From Euprymna scolopes (Eukaryota), in assembly GCA_053919585.1 (NCBI GenBank), contig CM132785.1: 64,000 nt of DNA; one strand, 5' to 3'. The position numbers and the translations under genes are program-made. Every line of letters begins with the position of its first letter. The first letter of the stretch is position 1. This document shows, one piece after another, positions 919 through 37,827 of the stretch. The notes under the pieces are model-generated. The model was not told the DNA's origin and did not search any database. It saw nothing but the letters and a program-made list of their open reading frames with translations.

Positions 919-1805
919 TTTTTTTTACAAGGAGGTCACCACTTATCAAGGCCCGGAAGCCACTCAGAGATAAGGGTTATTGCATGTACAGTACGTTGTA
1001 CGTTAGTGTTGAGATTTCATAAAGTGTCTACTTAAGCGGGCGGTTCATCACGAATTTGTTTACGTTGTAGTCAGGCGGGAAACAGGCAGATGGAACAGAG
1101 TTCCACTGGCGTGCTGTTCTAAGAAAGAAGCTGTGTTCATGGAATTTACGTTTTGATTTAGGCACAGATAAAGAGTGGAGAAAATTTTTGACTGTGGCTT
1201 CATCTAGACGGGTGTTTTTCGTAAAAGATTGGCGAGGGGGAACCAGAGATTGGAGCTCAGACGAGCACTTGCCATGGAAATAACGGTAAAACAAAGACAG
1301 GCTCGCAACGTCTCTTCTGTGGGAGAGAGGTTGCAGGGAAGAGAAAAGGGCATCCTCCACTAAGCCACGAAGTCTATTTTGTATTCTATCAAGGCAGGAT
1401 AGGCTGTTTTTTTCAGCTCCTGCCCAGATATGGCAGCAGTATTCCATCCTTGGACGTACTTGGCTTTTATATAGATAGAGAATTGCATCAGTAGTGAGAT
1501 ATCTTCTGGAGCGGTAGAAGGAACCCACCATCTTTCCAGCGACCCTGGCAACAGACTTGATGTACGTGTTCCATTTCATATCAGGAGTAAAGGTCAAGCT
1601 CAGAAGCTTGTCAAAACATTGAGCTTCTCCTAGGCGAGAGCCATCCATTACAATTGATGCCAGATGGGGATCAGATCGTTGATGGTGTAAAGATAGGAGC
1701 TTGGTTTTAGATGCATTAAAGGTAACCAGCCACGTCTTCCCCCACTGAACTACCCGCTCGAGATGTGTTGCCGTAGATGGTCGTGTCATCAGCATAGATG
1801 TCAAT
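919..1805 (-). mobile_element. 5'-truncated CR1/Jockey-group LINE (family A): RT C-terminus, 3' UTR and poly(A)
   Basis: ORF 1028-1804 has the motifs WGKTWLVTFNASKT, LYKSQVRPRMEYCCHIWAGA and LQPLSHRRDVASLSLFYRYFHGKCS. An alternative frame at ~1775-1803 reads DIYADDTTIY. The T-run at 919-926 is the poly(A) tail. Confidence 0.93.
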
Positions 1806-2279
1806 GAATGATTTAAGTATGTGTTTAAATTATAAAAGCAGATTGGGGTCCTTAGATTTAACTACTTTATCATGGATTGAAATGAAGGATGACATAATTC
1901 GGATCTTCAAAATTATTAAAGTGATTTCTAAATGTAGAACAGACGTTTTAATATCTTTATTGGCATTAGTTTTTTTTATTTACAAGAAAGCCTTAATCAA
2001 GCATATAATTTTATAACAGAATAAAATAACTTAAAAATAAATTGCTAAATGCGGGATTCATGATAATATAAAATGTATGTACATGAATATTTTATATAAT
2101 GAAGTATTTAGGTGAATTTAACATATGCGTATGTTATATTCTGTGATTATATTTTGATTAATTTTACGTTTACGTGAAATTATTGATTAAACAACGGAAT
2201 TTTGTATTTTGAATTTTTTTAGTGAATATTAATAATTTGAATTCTTTGGATCATTCGAAATACTATTCTAATTTTAGTT

Positions 2280-2600
2280 GCTATTTCTAAAAATTAGGTG
2301 CCGTGGTTAAAAGTGTTGATTAGCAGCAAGTTCTGGGTTTTCTGGAACCTGATGATTCAATCTAAACTATGGGTGATAATAAATAAGAATAACATAATAA
2401 TTAACATTACTACGTGGCCATGGCCGATGGAACGATGACAATCTATCCTGGTTGCTTAATTAAAAATTGTAATTTTCATAGTTCAATATAAAGATTTACG
2501 TTCGAAAAAATACATCTGGAAACGGTCTGAGTTTACATCGGCCGAAACGTTGTGAAAATAACAACCAAAATGAGAAAAGTACTAATAATTCAAATAATAG
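2280..2600 (+). mobile_element. Short dispersed element (family H) ending in a hammerhead-like motif
   Basis: CTGGAAAC-GGTC..GGCC-GAAACGTTGTG-AAAATAACAACCAAAATGAG at 2516-2575; related copies at ~29660-29730(-), 30060-30150, 48895-49020, 49200-49260 and 53590-53720. Confidence 0.6.
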
Positions 2601-4169
2601 AAAACAAGTGATGCTCAAAGAAGGATAATAATTAAATTGAATAAATAAACTGAACTCAAATTTGAGCAGTATGTGTAAGTACAGGTAGAAATATAATTAG
2701 TGTATTATGTTTTTTTTTCTTTTATAGTATGGAAATGACATTTAATTGAATGAAAAATGCGTTTCTGACGCAATCAATGTACCCGTTCACTTGTAAAGGA
2801 TTTCGGTAAAAGAACACTAAATTCAAAAGTATATTTTTGCCATGGTAAAAAGTTGAAAGAAGAATGCTGCTTATATAAAGAATAGGATATGAACAACTGT
2901 TAGACTTCATCTTGAAACTGCTTTAGACAAGGTGTGAAGCCACTTGATGTAAGGATCTAGCAAGGACGAAACAGATTATCGAAAAGAAAGGATATGCCTA
3001 TTAGTCTTAGTCTTGAGAAAACCAAGGCTATAAGTAGAGGGAAAATAGTCACCAAGAAGAAACTTCTACAATCCTGCAGTTCTTGAAAATAAGATACTGG
3101 AAGAGAAAACTGTATTACAATGAAAACAGTTAATTAATGAAAACCACTAAACCACTGAAACAAAATGATAGATCAAACAATTCTGAAGAATACAAATCAT
3201 AATAGTGTGGTTGAAAGCAAACCCTTTTGGGAGAGTTGGATTTTTTCACATAAACCGATCTTGTGTTTAACTCGGTCCTTGCGAGGAAGCAAGTAAATAG
3301 GGATCACTAGCTTTAATTTATTTGGTACTGTATCTCAAACAGCAAGCATATTGAAGATTATTTAAATCGCTATACATTAAAAAGCGAAAATAAGAAGTCG
3401 GTTGTCAAACGAGCTCAAAAGTTAAATTTAACACCTATGAGAATAGCGTAGGCGGAAGACATGAATGGGCATACGGAGACCACATGATAATTAGCAAATG
3501 GGCGCATTTAATTTATTATCGGGTTAAAAATGAATTGGGAAGGCCTTTTAAAATTAACTTTAAAACATTAATTAGAGTAAAGCTAACGCTCCGTCTTCCT
3601 TTTCCATTCCTAATCTGCTATGTCAAAATGAATAAAGGAATGTAATATCTCCGTTAAAATCGGCGGAGTTAATTAATTATAATAATCAACGATCCAGCAA
3701 AACAAGGTACTCTCTAAAAATTCACAAGTTCTGTGCAGATGAATAAATAGATATATATATATAGATAGATACTTTGTGCGTTCAAATAATAGTGTGCATA
3801 TATTATGTTTCTAGTCACGAAAATAAATCTGTAGACATTTCTGAATCGTTTTTCTTGTTCAGTCAATGTTTTTCAATGGATAAACCCTAATATTCTTTCC
3901 CTGTCATTCAAGTGATGAGCTGAACTAAACAGGTGTTGTTTTGCATCAATCTATCTGAAGTATTTTCCATTCTGTATTCAAGCATTTTTAATAAACACAG
4001 TGATTGTCAAGGAGTATGTTCATGCGCTTAATTAACTGACATAAAAAAGTGTCAGTGTATTTAGAGTCAATGAACATAACATCCGTATTATACAAGCATA
4101 AACATACATGAATGTATAGTTATATATATGCACTGACAGATAAATATAAATTTAGATGAATAATTAGAT

Positions 4170-13800: not shown

Positions 13801-14610
13801 AATGTGTTGGAGATGTAAAAATGGCGATTTTCGTAGTTAAATTGAAGTTTTTCCAAGGGGTGGAGGCTTGTAAGTGTTTATTATTGATTGGTATGCTCAA
13901 TTTTTATTGCTCTTTTATTGGGCTTGTCCAGGGAGACGCTGACCTGGCTGTAGTCGCTATCTCTTTCTGCTAATATTTTTTTTGTTNNNNNNNNNNNNNN
14001 NNNNNNNNNNNNNNNNNNNNNNNNNNNNNNNNNNNNNNNNNNNNNNNNNNNNNNNNNNNNNNNNNNNNNNNNNNNNNNNNNNNNNNNNNNNNNNNNNNNN
14101 NNNNNNNNNNNNNNNNNNNNNNNNNNNGGAATGTGTATATTGTTTTATAGTATTTGGGGGTTATTTGCTTCCTTAGGAAGGCGGCTGTGGTCCGAGGTCG
14201 TTACTAATGTGTATGTGTGGGGAGGGGGGACTGGCTCTTCTGAAATAAGGGTAGGGGTGCTTTCATTCTATTTTGATATTTATTTTTTGGATTCTTGGAT
14301 TTTAGTATTGTGATTTTTCGTTTTAGTCTTTTCGGGTATTCCTTATATTATGTTTGTTTAGAAAGAGGGGTGTATTTAAAATAGGGGATTTTTTAATTTT
14401 TCTATTTATTTGTCTCCCCATGTGGGTATGGCTAGACCCAGGATCGGTTCCTAGTGTGGGGAAGATTTATATATATAGTTTAATAGACAGGGTCTAAATG
14501 AGCAAAGTCTCAGTAAAATATATTGAAAGGTGATGTGCTCTATTGCAGTTATGATAAGTTCAGTAGGTGTAATTCATTTGACACACTTTCAATATATATA
14601 TATTTTTTTT

Positions 14611-24550: not shown

Positions 24551-25739
24551 ATTGACATCAGAGCATAGTCGTGGAATAAAAACTATATGACTCTTCTAGC
24601 CCTCCTCTATCTAAAGGGGCGAAAAGCCAGAACCTAAAATACTTACATGCAATCAAACATATACAACTACGGTGAAAACTGTGAGAAAATAGAGTTCTTA
24701 TTTACTTGCTTCCCAACAGGAGCTGAGTTAGACAGAAGGGTTGTTGTTAATGCAGAGAAAATTTGTCTACCCCTAAAAGGGGCATCTCGGAGTAGGACAA
24801 AAGTTAAAATTTCCTCAATCTAGAACGACCAAAAAAGATTGACCAAAAGCGGAAAATACTAATTGTAGCATCAAGTCAGAATTTACACTTTGAATTATTT
24901 ATTTGCTATAAGGTACAAAAATACAATGTAATAAATTAAACCTCATCAAAAGTGTGAGGAAATTCTCTAACCTATAATCATTGCTTAATATTGGCATTTC
25001 TGATTTTTAGATTAAGTATTTTTGCTATTAGTATGGCATGCTTTAATTTATGCGTTGCTTTTCTAACCACATGCTGTGTTGATTCAAAAGGAACCAGAAT
25101 AGCATCAGAAATAACATGAAAGAGCGTCTCCCGTAGAGAGTTTTGTGAAATTATGTGTTCTAAAGAAGCTAATTGGAATTTCAAAATGATGCCGCTTACA
25201 TATACACCAAGTATATAATGATTCAAAATAATAAGAAGATCGAGTTTTGTGAAACTGCGTTTCAATCTATGCCCCTCCTCTATAAACAATTCAAAAGAAA
25301 AACTCGTATATCTACAATCACCTTCAACAGTTTTCTTTTTTAATGGGAATATTGTTTTCTTTTTCGCATAGAATATTATGTTGAACACCAGGTCGAGACG
25401 AAGTTAAAATTTGTTGAAAAGTTTCTAAAACTTTAGACCGCTGAAAAGTATGACACACACTTCTTTTGTATATGAATAAAAGAAAAGTTAAGCTTTATTT
25501 TTTCTTTGACATAAGTGTAACATGAAAGCGGTTTTGTTGGCAGCGCAACGAACCATGACCAAATAATATTATGTCAGCTTAATCTGTCTTTTTCAACCTC
25601 TATCTCTGTATGTATGTATGTATCTAACTTTAGCCATGTTAATTCTTTGCGAGCTATTATTTATTATACATGTAAGCACACATTCTACGTTTCTGTCTCT
25701 CTCTCTCACTTACTCTCTCTCTCTCTCTCTCTCTACCTA

Positions 25740-31200: not shown

Positions 31201-31491
31201 TCAACCAGAACGGATAATACACTGATACAAATAAAAATATGATAATCGCACATCTGTATAATCTTTATCACGTTAACCCCATTTATGCGACCAAAATCAT
31301 GTCAAAAATGTATATTACGTCGAGGAGAGATTCACTTTCGCTGGAGAATTTCATTATTAGGTCGGTTGATTGAGAATGCGAGTGGATGATGAAAAAGGTG
31401 GAAACTCTATATGATGTCTCACGCTCGACAGCACATCACATGACTTAAATGTCTAAACGTTTTGGGGTGGGGGTCAGCTTTGTTTGTACCT

Positions 31492-31681
31492 ATTTATAAT
31501 GCCTCCCCACGGGACAGAGTAAGACACCAGGGTCGTTTTTTAACGTGGAGAAAAGGTACAAAAATAAAAAAAATTGTCTCAGTCGTGAAGGACCGCTCCT
31601 CCACCGAAAGAGAACACGAAATGGAAGCGCAGCACCTGAAGAACAGATATCACACTTTAATCTTGGCCAAAAGGCCAAGTA
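31492..31681 (-). mobile_element. U2 snRNA-headed SINE-like retroposon, copy 1, with TSD
   Basis: Minus strand begins TACTTGGCCTTTTGGCCAAGATTAAAGTGTGATATCTGTTCTT (U2 nt ~6-48), then a non-U2 body and tail GACCCTGGTGTCTTACTCTGTCCCGTGGGGAGGCATTATAAAT; flanked by TTGTTTGTACCT (31480-31491) and TTGTTTGTAGCT (31682-31693). Confidence 0.8.
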
Positions 31682-34199
31682 TTGTTTGTAGCTTTATAGC
31701 AATTCACACATAATTCTACATTTTAAACTCAATAATTTTAGCCGATATTTACGTACTTAGAAAAGGATAATCAATCTGATACTTATGTGCATATTTTTGT
31801 ACGCATACATGTGTCTATATGAGTATGTAGCTGTGTTTATGAGTATTTGCATTTTCGCGTTAGTATGTGCGACCATGGGTATATGGGTGCGCGTGCATGT
31901 ATGCATGTATGTGTTTGTTGGGATGAAGATGTAAAAATAATTAGAAATTAACCAGAATTCTAAGATATAGCATTATCCAACTTTTCTCTATATAATGCGA
32001 ATTTCTTTATAAGACTAATAGTACGTATGGCGTGAAAATCTCAGAATTTCGAAGCTGTGTTTATCTAGCGGCGTGTATAGAAAAAACACACACATGATTA
32101 GGTATGCGTGATATTGTGGTTGTCAAATTATCCATAGACCCAACAACTCACTGAGCATGTCTCAAAGCCCATATAATTACATACGCAGATAAGCAGAACG
32201 AATATATATATATATATATATATATATAAACATATATGTGTGTGTGTCACATGAGGAAATATTTATAAGAACAAACACATATAGAGATAATGTGTGTATT
32301 TTAATGTGTTCAACTTTTTTCAAAGTTTCTTATGATCCTTTGTCCGCTGAACAACATCTGTGTGTGTGTGTGTCTGTCTGTCTGTCTGTGTTTGTATGTA
32401 TGTGTGAAACTTGTTAAGAGTATATTACCGCCGAATTACTTTAATTCTTGTCAGTTTGGATCTGAATGTTCAAAACAACACATTACACCAGAAATATTAA
32501 TTTATTTATCAACAAGAAAAAATGTATTTTAAAATATGCTGCATGTTTGAAAAATAACTCTTTTTAATACTTTTTTAACGGAATCTACTTACTACGTAGA
32601 ATAAGAGGATTTTTTCTAAAATCTAAAATAAAATGTATCTTTCTGAAATCATAGTGTAAAAATGTCGAATGTACGCTGATATAAGATATTGGTGGAAGGT
32701 GCAAATACATACGTATGTGAAATAATCAGAAACCAGTGGTATAAAAACTCAGCCTATTGACCGGGTACTGGTACGGGTTGTAAAGTAAGTTTGAAAAAAA
32801 ATCACAAAGTAAAAATTGGGACCTGCATACATTTCAGATTTTTCTAACCATTCGACTCATTTGTTAAGTACTTAAACCGAGACACACGTTAGGTAACCCT
32901 TCTTCTGAGATAAAAATTCAAATTCTGTAAGAGTCTCATTTTTTGCTTTATCTTTTTCTTGTTTATTCACAGTCACGTGGATTTAATCCATTGTTTATTT
33001 GATATTATCCGCAGACATTATCATCGACAAAAGATGGGAGTGTAATATATAAGAACCTGCTTAACATTTGTCTGATTCACTTTCCTGGGCTAGTCAGTTC
33101 GAAAGAAAGTAGGGCTTAATGAAGAAAAAAGCAGAAAAAAAACTGATAACCAGCAAGAATTTGCAAGTTCAAATTCTCAAGAGCAAAATAGAAAAGCAAC
33201 TTCAACTATTTTTTCTCATAGTTCACTCATGTGACATCTCTGTAAAGATCATTATGGTCGTCTTTTTTAGGGTAGAATGAAGGCACCACTCACATTGAGT
33301 ATTAAGTAAATAAACTGAATTTTTTTTTTTTTTGGATCGAGTGTGCGTAAGTGTATGTCCGAGGTAAGGCGAAATCGGATAACACTGATTTTGAAGTCTG
33401 CTCTGACTGGTGTTGGAGAGAAAAGAGACAGAAACGAATTATATTCCCTTTCAGTATTCCATGCATGCGGACTCTCTGTGATTAGTGAACTTTTATATCA
33501 ATTTGTTTAGCTTGTTCCTTATGTAACTTGTACATTAGTATATTATTTTAAAGGCAAATCTGAATATTTCATTTTTCGTTTCCACTTGCACCAATCTGCA
33601 AAAGTGTTATACCCAATGCATGTATTACATAAAATAATGACTGTATAATAGCACCAACGCATATTATAGCTTTATAGAATAAAAATATTTTTGTTTTGGT
33701 CATTACTAATACAAACTGAGGTTCATTTTGGCAACATTCTGGTAATTTAGAAGCTGCGCTGAACCATCAGTGCCTTCGTTGTTGAGATAAAGTATGGTTC
33801 GGCTCAGTTCTCGGAAATTAACTTTCTCAGGCATTATGCTTTCCTTCTAGAGAAATGTTAGTTTTTCATCAGTCGCCTGGTGCGCTTCTGTCGGGAATGC
33901 CGTCAAGTAGGTTCTCATATATTTGGGGAGGAAGAAAGACTCATCCTCCCAATGTTTACATGTCTAAGATTGCAGCAGTGGAAAGCGGATAAATATTGAT
34001 AATAATATTGAACTTGGTGTAGATGTACATGCTAAATTACATTATGTTCTATAATTTATGCATAAATTTTAGTGTATGTTATTTTTAAACAGTTACAGAT
34101 ATACAAATATTCGTTAAACAATAAGCAACGAATTGGTTTATAAGCATTGTCAGTAAATGTGCATTTATCAAAAGTAGGTTGCAGCAGACATAAGATAAC

Positions 34200-34400
34200 C
34201 ATTCAAGAGTAAGACACAAAATCGTTCTTTTATGTGAGAAAAATCCAGCTCACCAAAAAGTATACTGTGCATTGGGACGAAAGTAAAAGTTGTCGAAGTT
34301 TAGAAGGGTTTCTTCTTCACTGAACGAGAACAGAAAAGGTGAAGTGTAGTAACAGAACAGATACTACACTTTGCTCCTTGCCAAAAGGTCAAGGACACAT
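34200..34400 (-). mobile_element. U2 snRNA-headed SINE-like retroposon, copy 2
   Basis: Minus strand from 34400: ATGTGTCCTTGACCTTTTGGCAAGGAGCAAAGTGTAGTATCTGTTCT, an ungapped match to U2 nt 1-47; body and tail align with copy 1. Confidence 0.78.
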
Positions 34401-35760: not shown

Positions 35761-37827
35761 AGGCCATAATAAATAAACTATTCCGTCAAATAATAATTAA
35801 GATATTCCTTAATTATTATTTTTCTAGATGACCTATTTATCTCACTAACAATAAAACCCAAGTATATTTCGTATATTTTTTACACATAAAAAGAACAAAC
35901 GGTACACACTTGTTTTTCTTTGTTACAACCATGTAATATACATTTATCTATACATGTTTTATTAAAATCGTTTAATACTGAAATATAAGTAAACAAGCAT
36001 TGAGGATTTTTCTTGACACCAAAGCCAACAGACTCTGGACCAGTGTTGAAATGTTTTTTCACTGTTGGTTGAAGCATAATTGGCTTTGCTTCTGTGCAAT
36101 TCTATAAGATTCAGTCTTCCAGGCTTCGCCTCTCGTATTTTTACTAGAGTAAATGTATTCCCTGTTGCCTGATTCGCATTGATCAGGGAATTCCAACGGG
36201 GCTGCACAGGCAATTTTAATAGGCCAGAGTACTCCTCCTTTAGAGGTACTGAGGACTGTGCCCACCTTCCGACCTTGTGTCACAGAAGGAAGTAAATACC
36301 AGCATCATAATAGTTCGAGAATTCAATCAAATTGAAAAAAGATCCCACAAGTAAGTGAAATCTCAATAATCATTTAGATACTATCAGCGACAGTAAATTG
36401 GCGTTTATACTAGGACCTTTACGATAATGGTAGTTGGCTATTTCACTTATCACAGTGTTCCTATTTACTTGTTTCCCCATGACAGTAAACATTTTAATAT
36501 GGAGAAAATTCCTTAAAAAGAGGCACTGGGTTTGAAAAAAGTAACAATTGTACCTCTATCTAGCGGGACTTTTTCTTCACTGACTAAGGATAGATAGACT
36601 TAGTGTAGTACTAAGTCTATTCGAATTATAACTAAAAAACTTGTGTAAAACTGATATACACTATTGTAATTCAGCTTCTTTTCCATTGTGCCATGTTTTT
36701 GTACGCATATTGTAAAACACTGATGTCCATGTGTGCATGTGCATTTGTCTGTGTACGCTATGTTTGTGCATGGGTATATACGCGTGCATGTATGCATATG
36801 CGCACGTCAATCTGTATGCCTATTGAAATTAATATTAGTGACATCTTTTCTCCATTTAACAACGAATGTATAAGCCTTTTCAAATAGCGCACATTTTGGA
36901 ACGTTATTAACGAAGTTCTGTAATTAAAAAGTATCTAAAAAGAATGTCTTTGTAATTCCCTCTTACTTGACTTGGCATATTCCTCATATACAAACAACCG
37001 CCTATTGAAGCCATTGGGTCTATGTTATTGCTCTTTCTTTTTGTGTTACAATCTGATGTTGATTTAACCATAAGCGATTACTCGAGAAGCATTGAAGTTA
37101 GAAATACGATTCCCCTCAGATGGGATGGGCTAAGGGTGTTTCTATCACCTTTAAACTCGGGTAGTATTTGACGCACAGAATAAGCACAGTCGACATGCAG
37201 CAATAGACAAAAATAATCGCCTCACTATATAAACATGTCAAAGTGCACTATTGTTAGTTACATAAAAATGAAATACTTATATTAATAAATAAGTATATAA
37301 CTTTATGTTAATTTATTCTAAACATTGAACCAACATTGGCACATTAGACATTACTGTATGCATTACTCACTTAGAAATATAAGTGTCCTTTTCCTTTTAT
37401 TCTTCATTTAAGTCATTTATTTATTTACTTTATCCTCTTAATCTTCTTCTCTTTGCTGCAACTACTAGTGCTACTGCTTTAGTATATTATTTTCTTCTTT
37501 ATTTTCGTCATTTATTTATTTACGTTAGTTTTCTACTTTCCCCTTATGCTTCTGTGACTATTACCTCAATTTCTCTCCTTCAATCACTTCTCGCCTCATT
37601 TGCTTTTACTACGTAAGTACGTAAAACTTACTCTCTCTGGAGAGCTTTATTACACGACTGAGGACTGGAGCGGTTGTTTCGTTGCATCAACACATTCGTG
37701 GATTACCATGTTACACTGTAGTAGTTGCTAAAAGTGTTTTAAGGGCTGTATTCGTTTTCTGATACCGTAAAAATGGCAGCATCCTGTTTTGATTTGATCT
37801 TCTGTAAAACAATTCATATATATATAA

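Follow-up and report, generated by a model that had tools for sequence, protein, structure and literature searches.

A U2 snRNA-headed and probably SINEU-like retroposon superfamily in the genome of Euprymna scolopes

The window analyzed here, a stretch of 64,000 nucleotides (nt) from Euprymna scolopes (positions 155,000,001-155,064,000 of G000:C3, NCBI GenBank contig CM132785.1; assembly GCA_053919585.1, 5.9 Gb in 46 chromosome-scale contigs), contains two elements of about 200 bp on the minus strand that begin like U2 small nuclear RNA (snRNA) and then continue with sequence of another kind. This raises the question whether the two elements are remnants of U2 genes or members of a mobile family and, in the latter case, how such a family came into being and spread. 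A preliminary description, made from the letters of the window alone, had favored a transposing chimeric family over simple U2 pseudogenes. The results reported below agree with this view. With a probability of about 0.88, the elements represent a high-copy, non-autonomous retroposon superfamily that resembles short interspersed nuclear elements (SINEs) and is of the "SINEU" kind. At least 37,000 head-bearing copies are present in the genome.

The two elements and their families

The two minus-strand elements, termed copy 1 and copy 2, are real. The U2 model of Rfam (RF00004) aligned both with 32.0 and 32.7 bits (E 4e-4 to 6e-4), which is below the gathering score of 46 bits. Their parts are listed below; the families fam1, fam2, and fam3 are introduced in the following paragraphs.

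31484-31682, minus strand: copy 1, full-length fam1 member of 199 bp (BLAST, 95% identity to the fam1 consensus)
31639-31680, minus strand: copy 1, U2-derived head, approximately U2 nt 7-48, including the equivalent of stem-loop I (Rfam alignment and the genome's own U2 genes L063/L065)
31625-31657, minus strand: copy 1, hairpin 2 (sequence read directly; consensus fold), in which the U2 branch-point-recognition region forms the 5' arm (31644-31657), 31639-31643 the loop, and a new complementary segment the 3' arm (31625-31638)
31559-31573, minus strand: copy 1, T8-A-T5-G run, similar to an Sm site (ATTTTTG) and a potential terminator for RNA polymerase III (Pol III) (sequence; Rfam alignment to the U2 Sm site)
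31484-31547, minus strand: copy 1, 3' tail module (CACGTTAAAAAAC ... GGGGAGGCA..TAAATAGGTACAA), common to all families and without poly(A) (alignments of fam1, fam2, and fam3)
31682-31690, minus strand: copy 1, upstream copy of the target-site duplication (TSD), TACAAACAA
31480-31488, minus strand: copy 1, downstream copy of the TSD, TACAAACAA, whose first 5 nt are the conserved element terminus
34206-34395, minus strand: copy 2, fam2 member, family positions 1-191 of 222 (84% identity to the consensus)
34354-34395, minus strand: copy 2, U2-derived head (Rfam and alignment to the genome's own U2)
34342-34371, minus strand: copy 2, hairpin 2, composed of the U2 branch-point-recognition arm and its reverse complement

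Both copies depart from U2 after TCTGTTCT and then share a body and a tail, with 76% identity across 161 aligned positions, which confirms the common exit from U2 that had been proposed. Neither of them contains an open reading frame (ORF). Copy 1, for which an extent of 31492-31681 had been given, was found at this place and runs from 31682 to 31484, thus reaching further in the 3' direction; this 3' boundary is also backed by heterogeneous loose ends of RNA-seq reads at 31484-31489. The 12-bp direct repeat noticed around it (AGCTACAAACAA / AGGTACAAACAA) exists as well, with the reservation that it includes three bases of the conserved terminus, so that the true TSD is TACAAACAA. Copy 2 is without a recognizable terminal part of about 31 nt, and no clear TSD was seen for it. 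The 1-kb flanks of the two copies showed no mutual similarity. Copies 1 and 2 are independent insertions from two related families of one superfamily.

The two families were defined by genome-wide searches. Copy 1 retrieved relatives on all chromosomes at 90-94% identity (fam1) and copy 2 a second set at 78-82% identity (fam2). Consensus sequences and alignments were built from 30 genomic copies per family, flanks included. The copies of fam1 show 94-98.5% identity to a consensus of 199 bp, and those of fam2 85-93% identity to one of 222 bp. The shorter fam1 differs from fam2 in having lost about 32 nt internally. Both alignments showed sharp common ends and unrelated flanks, and within the superfamily discrete subfamilies with diagnostic changes were present. 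The genome-wide search that had been suggested for this locus thus returned many copies in unrelated surroundings, not merely two copies or a set with homologous flanks.

Copy numbers were determined by exact matching of junction motifs with at most three mismatches. The fam1 junction 33-mer gave 28,388 matches in the genome (14,299 on the plus strand and 14,089 on the minus strand) and the fam2 junction 32-mer 9,280 matches, distributed about equally over the strands, while the reversed patterns used as controls gave 0 matches for both families. These counts are lower bounds for fam2 and leave out the 5'-truncated copies of both families. A third family with the same architecture, fam3, was present in locus L007. 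There, positions 1700-3195 (minus strand) hold a head-to-tail array of fam3 units and of units with another body, all of which end in ...GGGGGAGCAAATAAATACC and restart at ATCTGTTCC.

DNA sequencing runs filed under five other coded organism labels also contained near-identical 31-mers from a fam1 copy, at shares of 0.68-0.74, and those under a sixth label at 0.21. Since six further organism labels carry them, an assembly artefact is ruled out and the occurrence of the family extends beyond this assembly. The same 31-mers occurred in two runs labeled "microbial mat metagenome" (shares 0.47 and 0.26).

Head, RNA structure and integration

To trace the source of the head, the elements were compared with the genome's own U2 genes. 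With a U2 46-mer of the vertebrate type 0 matches were obtained, and a protostome-type 31-mer with an extra A found the genes, which form a tandem array with a 764-bp unit on C9 and also occur dispersed (Rfam U2 161-179 bits). The array (G000:C9:168,865,794-168,969,000, L065-L075; 161 bits) is interrupted several times, with about 7.9-8.4 kb between matched units. A PSE-type promoter precedes its U2 units at about 168.87 Mb. The head of the fam1 consensus matched nt 11-48 of the genome's own U2 at 36 of 38 positions and that of fam2 at 35 of 37. For copy 2, the ungapped 38/47 match reported earlier was reproduced against the genome's own U2 over the 47 nt ending at 34354; U2 positions 1-7 contributed only 3/7 to it, which is chance level. 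The extra A (GATCAAAGTGTAG) is common to the heads and the genome's U2 genes and is missing from the Rfam consensus, indicating that the head was copied from the U2 of this lineage. These data show that the 5' part of the elements, about 42 nt, was copied from the lineage's own U2 snRNA, approximately nt 5-48.

With respect to the 5' end, a start at U2 nt 1 had been assumed. This applies at most to the longest forms, which are a minority: in the family alignments, conserved sequence begins at ATACTTGGCC or TCCTTGGCC, that is at about U2 nt 5-9. Of 74 non-redundant 5' junctions obtained by pattern search and counted by eye, about 30% carried an extension of the GCTTT- or TCTTT-type (U2 nt 4-9) and the rest were ragged; a small recurrent variant extended to AAGCTTTT.

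The 12-14 nt that follow TCTGTTCT are the reverse complement of the branch-point-recognition region of U2. The resulting hairpin 2 has a perfect stem of 12 bp in fam2, a stem of 14 bp with two G.U pairs in fam1, and one of 15 bp in fam3. In all three families the first 105 nt or so adopt a common fold of three hairpins, with z values of -6.9 to -8.8 relative to shuffled sequences (the 5' 109 nt of the fam1 consensus, with their 14-bp stem, gave -7.3). Each family has its own repair of the C.A mismatch that stem I has in real U2, and between the family consensuses hairpin 3 differs by two double, pair-preserving (compensatory) changes. As these changes distinguish master sequences and not neutral copies, they suggest selection on RNA structure.

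Local alignment of the rest of the body with U2 nt 49 onward was no better than with shuffled sequences (p 0.25-0.74), so that this part is not demonstrably diverged U2. The motif ATTTTTG, which Rfam aligned to the Sm site of U2, may be a retained piece or may match by chance; it lies in the T8-A-T5 run upstream of the tail, and a run of this kind is a strong Pol III terminator. ARAGORN found no tRNA-like structure in the elements, and Rfam gave no match to tRNA, 5S, or 7SL RNA at E ≤ 10. The elements therefore differ from canonical Pol III SINEs in having no head with A and B boxes and in carrying the T8-A-T5 run ahead of the tail.

The tail of about 62 nt is common to all families and ends with ...AAATAGG followed by TACAA in fam1 or AACA in fam2. 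All 58 aligned copies terminate in ...AAATAGG(T/A)ACA(A), after which the flank or the TSD follows directly without poly(A). In 29 of 59 copies the ends carried direct repeats of 10 nt or more with no more than one mismatch, compared to 12.8% of mispaired flanks used as controls. The TSDs measured 10-23 bp; the clear cases (12-23 bp) start exactly with TACAA in fam1 or AACA in fam2. Copies were often truncated at the 5' end, the 3' boundary was sharp, and the RNA-seq depth across the 3' part of the elements was about four-fold higher than across the 5' part. TSDs of variable length, 5' truncation, and a 3' end that is constant to the base characterize target-primed reverse transcription and identify the elements as retroposons of the type mobilized by long interspersed nuclear elements (LINEs). 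The systematic T/A difference between the families points to the RNA as template of the terminal bases, which may pair with the target. At L030:1306-1695, one fam1 copy directly follows another, and an 11-bp TSD (TACAAACAGAA) is found three times, ahead of the first copy, between the two, and behind the second.

Besides copies 1 and 2, the window contains five additional partial pieces of the superfamily:

24694-24828, minus strand: 5'-truncated fam2-type copy, family positions 88-221
3222-3301, plus strand: 5'-truncated fam2-type copy, family positions 135-218
14399-14466, minus strand: 5'-truncated fam2-type copy, family positions 153-220
36456-36584, minus strand: old, diverged 5'-truncated copy, family positions 72-222, 69% identity
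54660-54737, minus strand: fam2-type internal fragment, family positions 39-117

The region 31780-32400 between copies 1 and 2 is rich in microsatellites and low-complexity runs (CA, TA, ACAG, ACATAC), which account for weak matches to miRNA families in the Rfam scan (E 0.04-7).

Mobilization and alternative explanations

A retroposition cycle can be proposed from these features. A LINE enzyme, or another target-primed reverse transcriptase (RT), that recognizes the tail would copy an RNA of about 200 nt into DNA at a nicked target. Priming might be aided by pairing of the last bases of the RNA (UACAA in fam1, AACA in fam2) with the target, which would explain why every TSD starts with bases of this type. 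Since the template RNA must pass the internal T8/T5 run, transcription from the head by Pol III is unlikely, and RNA polymerase II (Pol II), acting at a few master loci or from flanking promoters, would be the more likely enzyme. At the level of the master genes, the head would have been reshaped into stable hairpins, with stem-loop I repaired and the branch-point-recognition sequence sequestered in a stem of 12-15 bp. This reshaping probably stabilizes the RNA and stops it from acting as a U2 decoy.

Several observations weigh against the assignment to a high-copy, SINE-like superfamily. Four genome pattern searches found no autonomous element sharing the tail at near-identity, although a diverged tail would escape them, and no source locus or promoter was identified. 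In poly(A) RNA-seq libraries, which do not reach small non-polyadenylated RNA, neither a discrete transcript nor a pile-up of read starts or ends was seen. The reads on the elements came from both orientations about equally and 91-93% of them continued into other flanks, so that most elements appear to be passengers in longer transcripts. Half of the sampled copies, mostly older ones, lack a clear TSD. Finally, part of the fam1 copy number results from amplification at the DNA level, as about 650 matches trace back to one insertion inside a 7.0-kb tandemly amplified unit that is present 652 times.

The search for a partner LINE included several candidates that had to be discarded. The tail following non-SINE sequence occurred only 37 and 44 times in the genome, nearly always in SINE copies with small deletions, and IUPAC patterns that demanded non-SINE sequence upstream of the tail returned only SINE variants. 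A tail-only match beside an RT was absent from the 264 kb of sequence examined. Within the window, an open frame at 1031-1861 (minus strand), with a counterpart at L040:120-560 (minus strand), resembles by eye the C-terminal part of LINE ORF2 (...FNASKTK...VRPRMEYCCHIWAG...) and has no Pfam match. Its 3' untranslated region ends near 930 in CTCCTTGTAAAAAAAA, and owing to this difference from the SINE tail it was dropped as a partner. The recurrent context TAAATGCTTCTC turned out to belong to a repeat, AT-rich and non-coding, that spans at least 1.4 kb (roughly 1100-2500 in each of L080-L087 when oriented; 342 genome matches to the junction). The SINE tail module lies internally in this repeat, and homology runs beyond the point at which SINE copies end. 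The 5' context ATTGTTCGCATT, with 652 copies in 7.0-kb arrays, had looked like a LINE with a U2 head and proved to be the single fam1 insertion in the amplified unit. This insertion, with the TSD ACAATTGTTCGC, is found at L077:1490-1712 and G000:C4:31,511,919-31,539,915 among other places, and its 51-mer junction recurs in identical form 652 times across the genome.

Four other explanations were weighed against the SINE-like reading. That the locus merely reflects a local segmental duplication or variant functional U2 genes can practically be set aside. The two copies do lie only 2.7 kb apart in the same orientation; their flanks share nothing, which excludes a local duplication, they are only 76% identical and belong to different subfamilies, and as U2 snRNA genes they fall below the Rfam gathering threshold and are missing stem-loops IIa, III, and IV. 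Scarcely more credible is an accumulation of independent U2 retropseudogenes or of chimeric retrocopies formed by RT template switching onto U2 snRNA, as in U6-L1 chimeras, with no single amplifying family. One-off events of this kind do occur in the genome. L061 contains a U2 pseudogene with 5' as well as 3' truncation, and L062:1416-1553 (minus strand) a retrocopy of U2 nt 3-66 with another AT-rich 3' part and a 17-bp TSD (TACCCCATCATATATAT). Independent switches would, however, vary in their junctions, whereas more than 37,000 copies share an identical U2/body junction, the hairpin, the body, and the tail and form discrete subfamilies. It was this combination of one junction in tens of thousands of dispersed copies with subfamilies, unrelated flanks, variable TSDs, and 5' truncation that upheld the earlier preference for a transposing chimeric family.

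A conventional Pol III SINE with an unrecognized promoter inside the body, to which the U2 piece was a mere 5' add-on, is improbable. The fam2 body contains an A-box-like sequence, TCGGTCAGTGG, that matches the tRNA A box at 9/11 positions, snRNA pieces have repeatedly been added to the 5' end of existing SINEs (Kojima, 2015; PMC4494074), and termination of Pol III at T-runs depends on context (PMC4758252). However, neither a B box nor a tRNA-like fold is present, and fam1, the younger and more successful family, has the A-box-like motif in disrupted form. The motif also lies about 70 nt from the 5' end, whereas the copies start at the U2 head. In addition, every full-length copy carries the T8-A-T5 run upstream of the tail. 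We consider it hardly less doubtful that the free-standing copies are by-products of a U2-site-specific system like that of Keno (Tx1 clade) and Utopia (NeSL clade), in which the "head" would be co-transcribed target and units would normally insert into U2-like heads, giving head-to-tail arrays. U2 downstream of Keno and Utopia insertions begins at nt 39 (TCTGTTCTT; PMC4640811). The units of the L007 array are joined as AAATACC directly followed by ATCTGTTCC, within 1 nt of this site, and the heads of fam1 and fam2 end 8-9 nt past it, as a TSD would. The array junctions could, however, equally be explained by template jumping of RT at the hairpin. Furthermore, copies 1 and 2 as well as the 58 relatives sampled all reside in non-U2 DNA with TSDs of the TACAA/AACA type, and no ORF for an RT or endonuclease is associated with the elements. 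Two kinds of junction, real U2 from nt 39 onward behind the fam3 tail and U2 nt 39-65 behind a non-U2 8-mer of any sequence, each gave 0 matches in the genome.

The SINE-like superfamily may also be given a more specific history, which we regard as unlikely. It would be a young, possibly active, Pol II-transcribed SINE that hijacks the snRNP (small nuclear ribonucleoprotein) pathway, born when a tail-bearing element inserted between nt 38 and 39 of a U2 gene and came to use the U2 promoter. In this case the U2 5' end, the repaired stem-loop I, and the Sm-like AUUUUUG between hairpins would provide for snRNA-type capping, assembly of an Sm ring, and nuclear re-import of the RNA. The hairpin would mask the branch-point-recognition sequence GUAGUA and spare splicing from tens of thousands of copies.

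Comparison with known systems

The closest parallel is provided by SINEU-1, -2, and -3 of crocodilians, snRNA-headed SINEs of which none was found outside crocodilians (Kojima, 2015; PMC4494074). Like these, the elements described here are short (below 500 bp), non-coding, constant repeats with a 5' region derived from U1 or U2 snRNA, here U2, and the head does not always reach nt 1 of the snRNA. An internal oligo-T argues against Pol III in both cases, and no promoter is recognizable. For SINEU-1, no LINE with the same 3' terminus is known, and here none was found at near-identity; 5' extensions and composite or dimeric forms are likewise shared. The differences concern mainly the 3' end and the targets. 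All SINEU have poly(A) tails and are thought to be mobilized by Tx1-Mar, with Mariner (Mariner-N4) as preferred target (PMC4494074), whereas the present elements lack poly(A), possess a conserved tail of about 62 nt ending in ...AAATAGG(T/A)ACA, and enter unrelated DNA at targets starting with TACAA or AACA. Moreover, the host is a mollusc, and the built-in hairpin over the branch-point-recognition sequence has not been described for SINEU. The superfamily thus works like SINEU and is set apart from the crocodilian families by their descriptions.

An independent invertebrate origin of SINEU-like elements had been proposed together with birth by insertion into a U2 gene. The first part is plausible, because the head carries the extra A of the host's U2 and the tail is without poly(A). 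Compared with SINEU as described, the signature of the host lineage's own U2 makes common descent with the crocodilian families unlikely. The second part fits the end of the head and the array junctions near the Keno/Utopia site, but neither such an insertion nor a source locus was found. For a derivation of the body from the end of a long autonomous element or from diverged U2, which had been named among the possible objections, no support was obtained: no autonomous element sharing the tail at near-identity was found, and similarity to U2 did not exceed that of shuffled sequences.

Keno and Utopia use the same short U2 stretch, and the head of the present elements ends just past the octamer TCTGTTCTT. 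Unlike these autonomous elements, which encode an RT and an apurinic-like (APE) or restriction-like endonuclease (RLE) and reside inside U2 genes, the units described here are about 200 bp long, contain no ORF, and are flanked by non-U2 DNA, and no join of non-U2 sequence to U2 nt 39-65 exists in the genome. Stringent-type tRNA SINEs have their 3' tail in common with a LINE that lacks poly(A), an example being the Ceph-SINEs with their RTE-like tails (PMC5786205). They resemble the superfamily in that the conserved 3' module carries no poly(A), TSDs vary in length, copies are truncated at the 5' end, and families with one tail have swapped bodies. They differ from it in that here the head derives from U2 and not from tRNA, A and B boxes are lacking, and the Ceph-domain motif CCTTGGGAAAG is absent. 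In U2 retropseudogenes and snRNA-LINE chimeras (Van Arsdell, 1981; Buzdin, 2002; both as cited in PMC4494074), U2 sequence was likewise moved by a LINE enzyme and flanked by TSDs. As far as they are portrayed in the citing paper, these are one-off events with varied junctions, whereas here a single chimera was amplified and diversified.

A mollusc description of a U2-headed SINE was not found in the searchable literature, which does not cover Repbase and Dfam. For the giant squid genome, about 1,300 U2 loci were reported, many of which are likely SINEs (PMC6962438). For annotation, our results mean that thousands of "U2" matches in cephalopod-type genomes are repeats and not genes. How SINEs amplify without an internal Pol III promoter is an open question (Kojima, 2015; PMC4494074), and the young subfamily, with a divergence of about 4%, makes the question of transcription accessible to experiment. 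In comparison to the crocodilian SINEU, the superfamily of E. scolopes represents a second, apparently independent case of snRNA-headed SINEs, which lies outside a single vertebrate order and is far more abundant.

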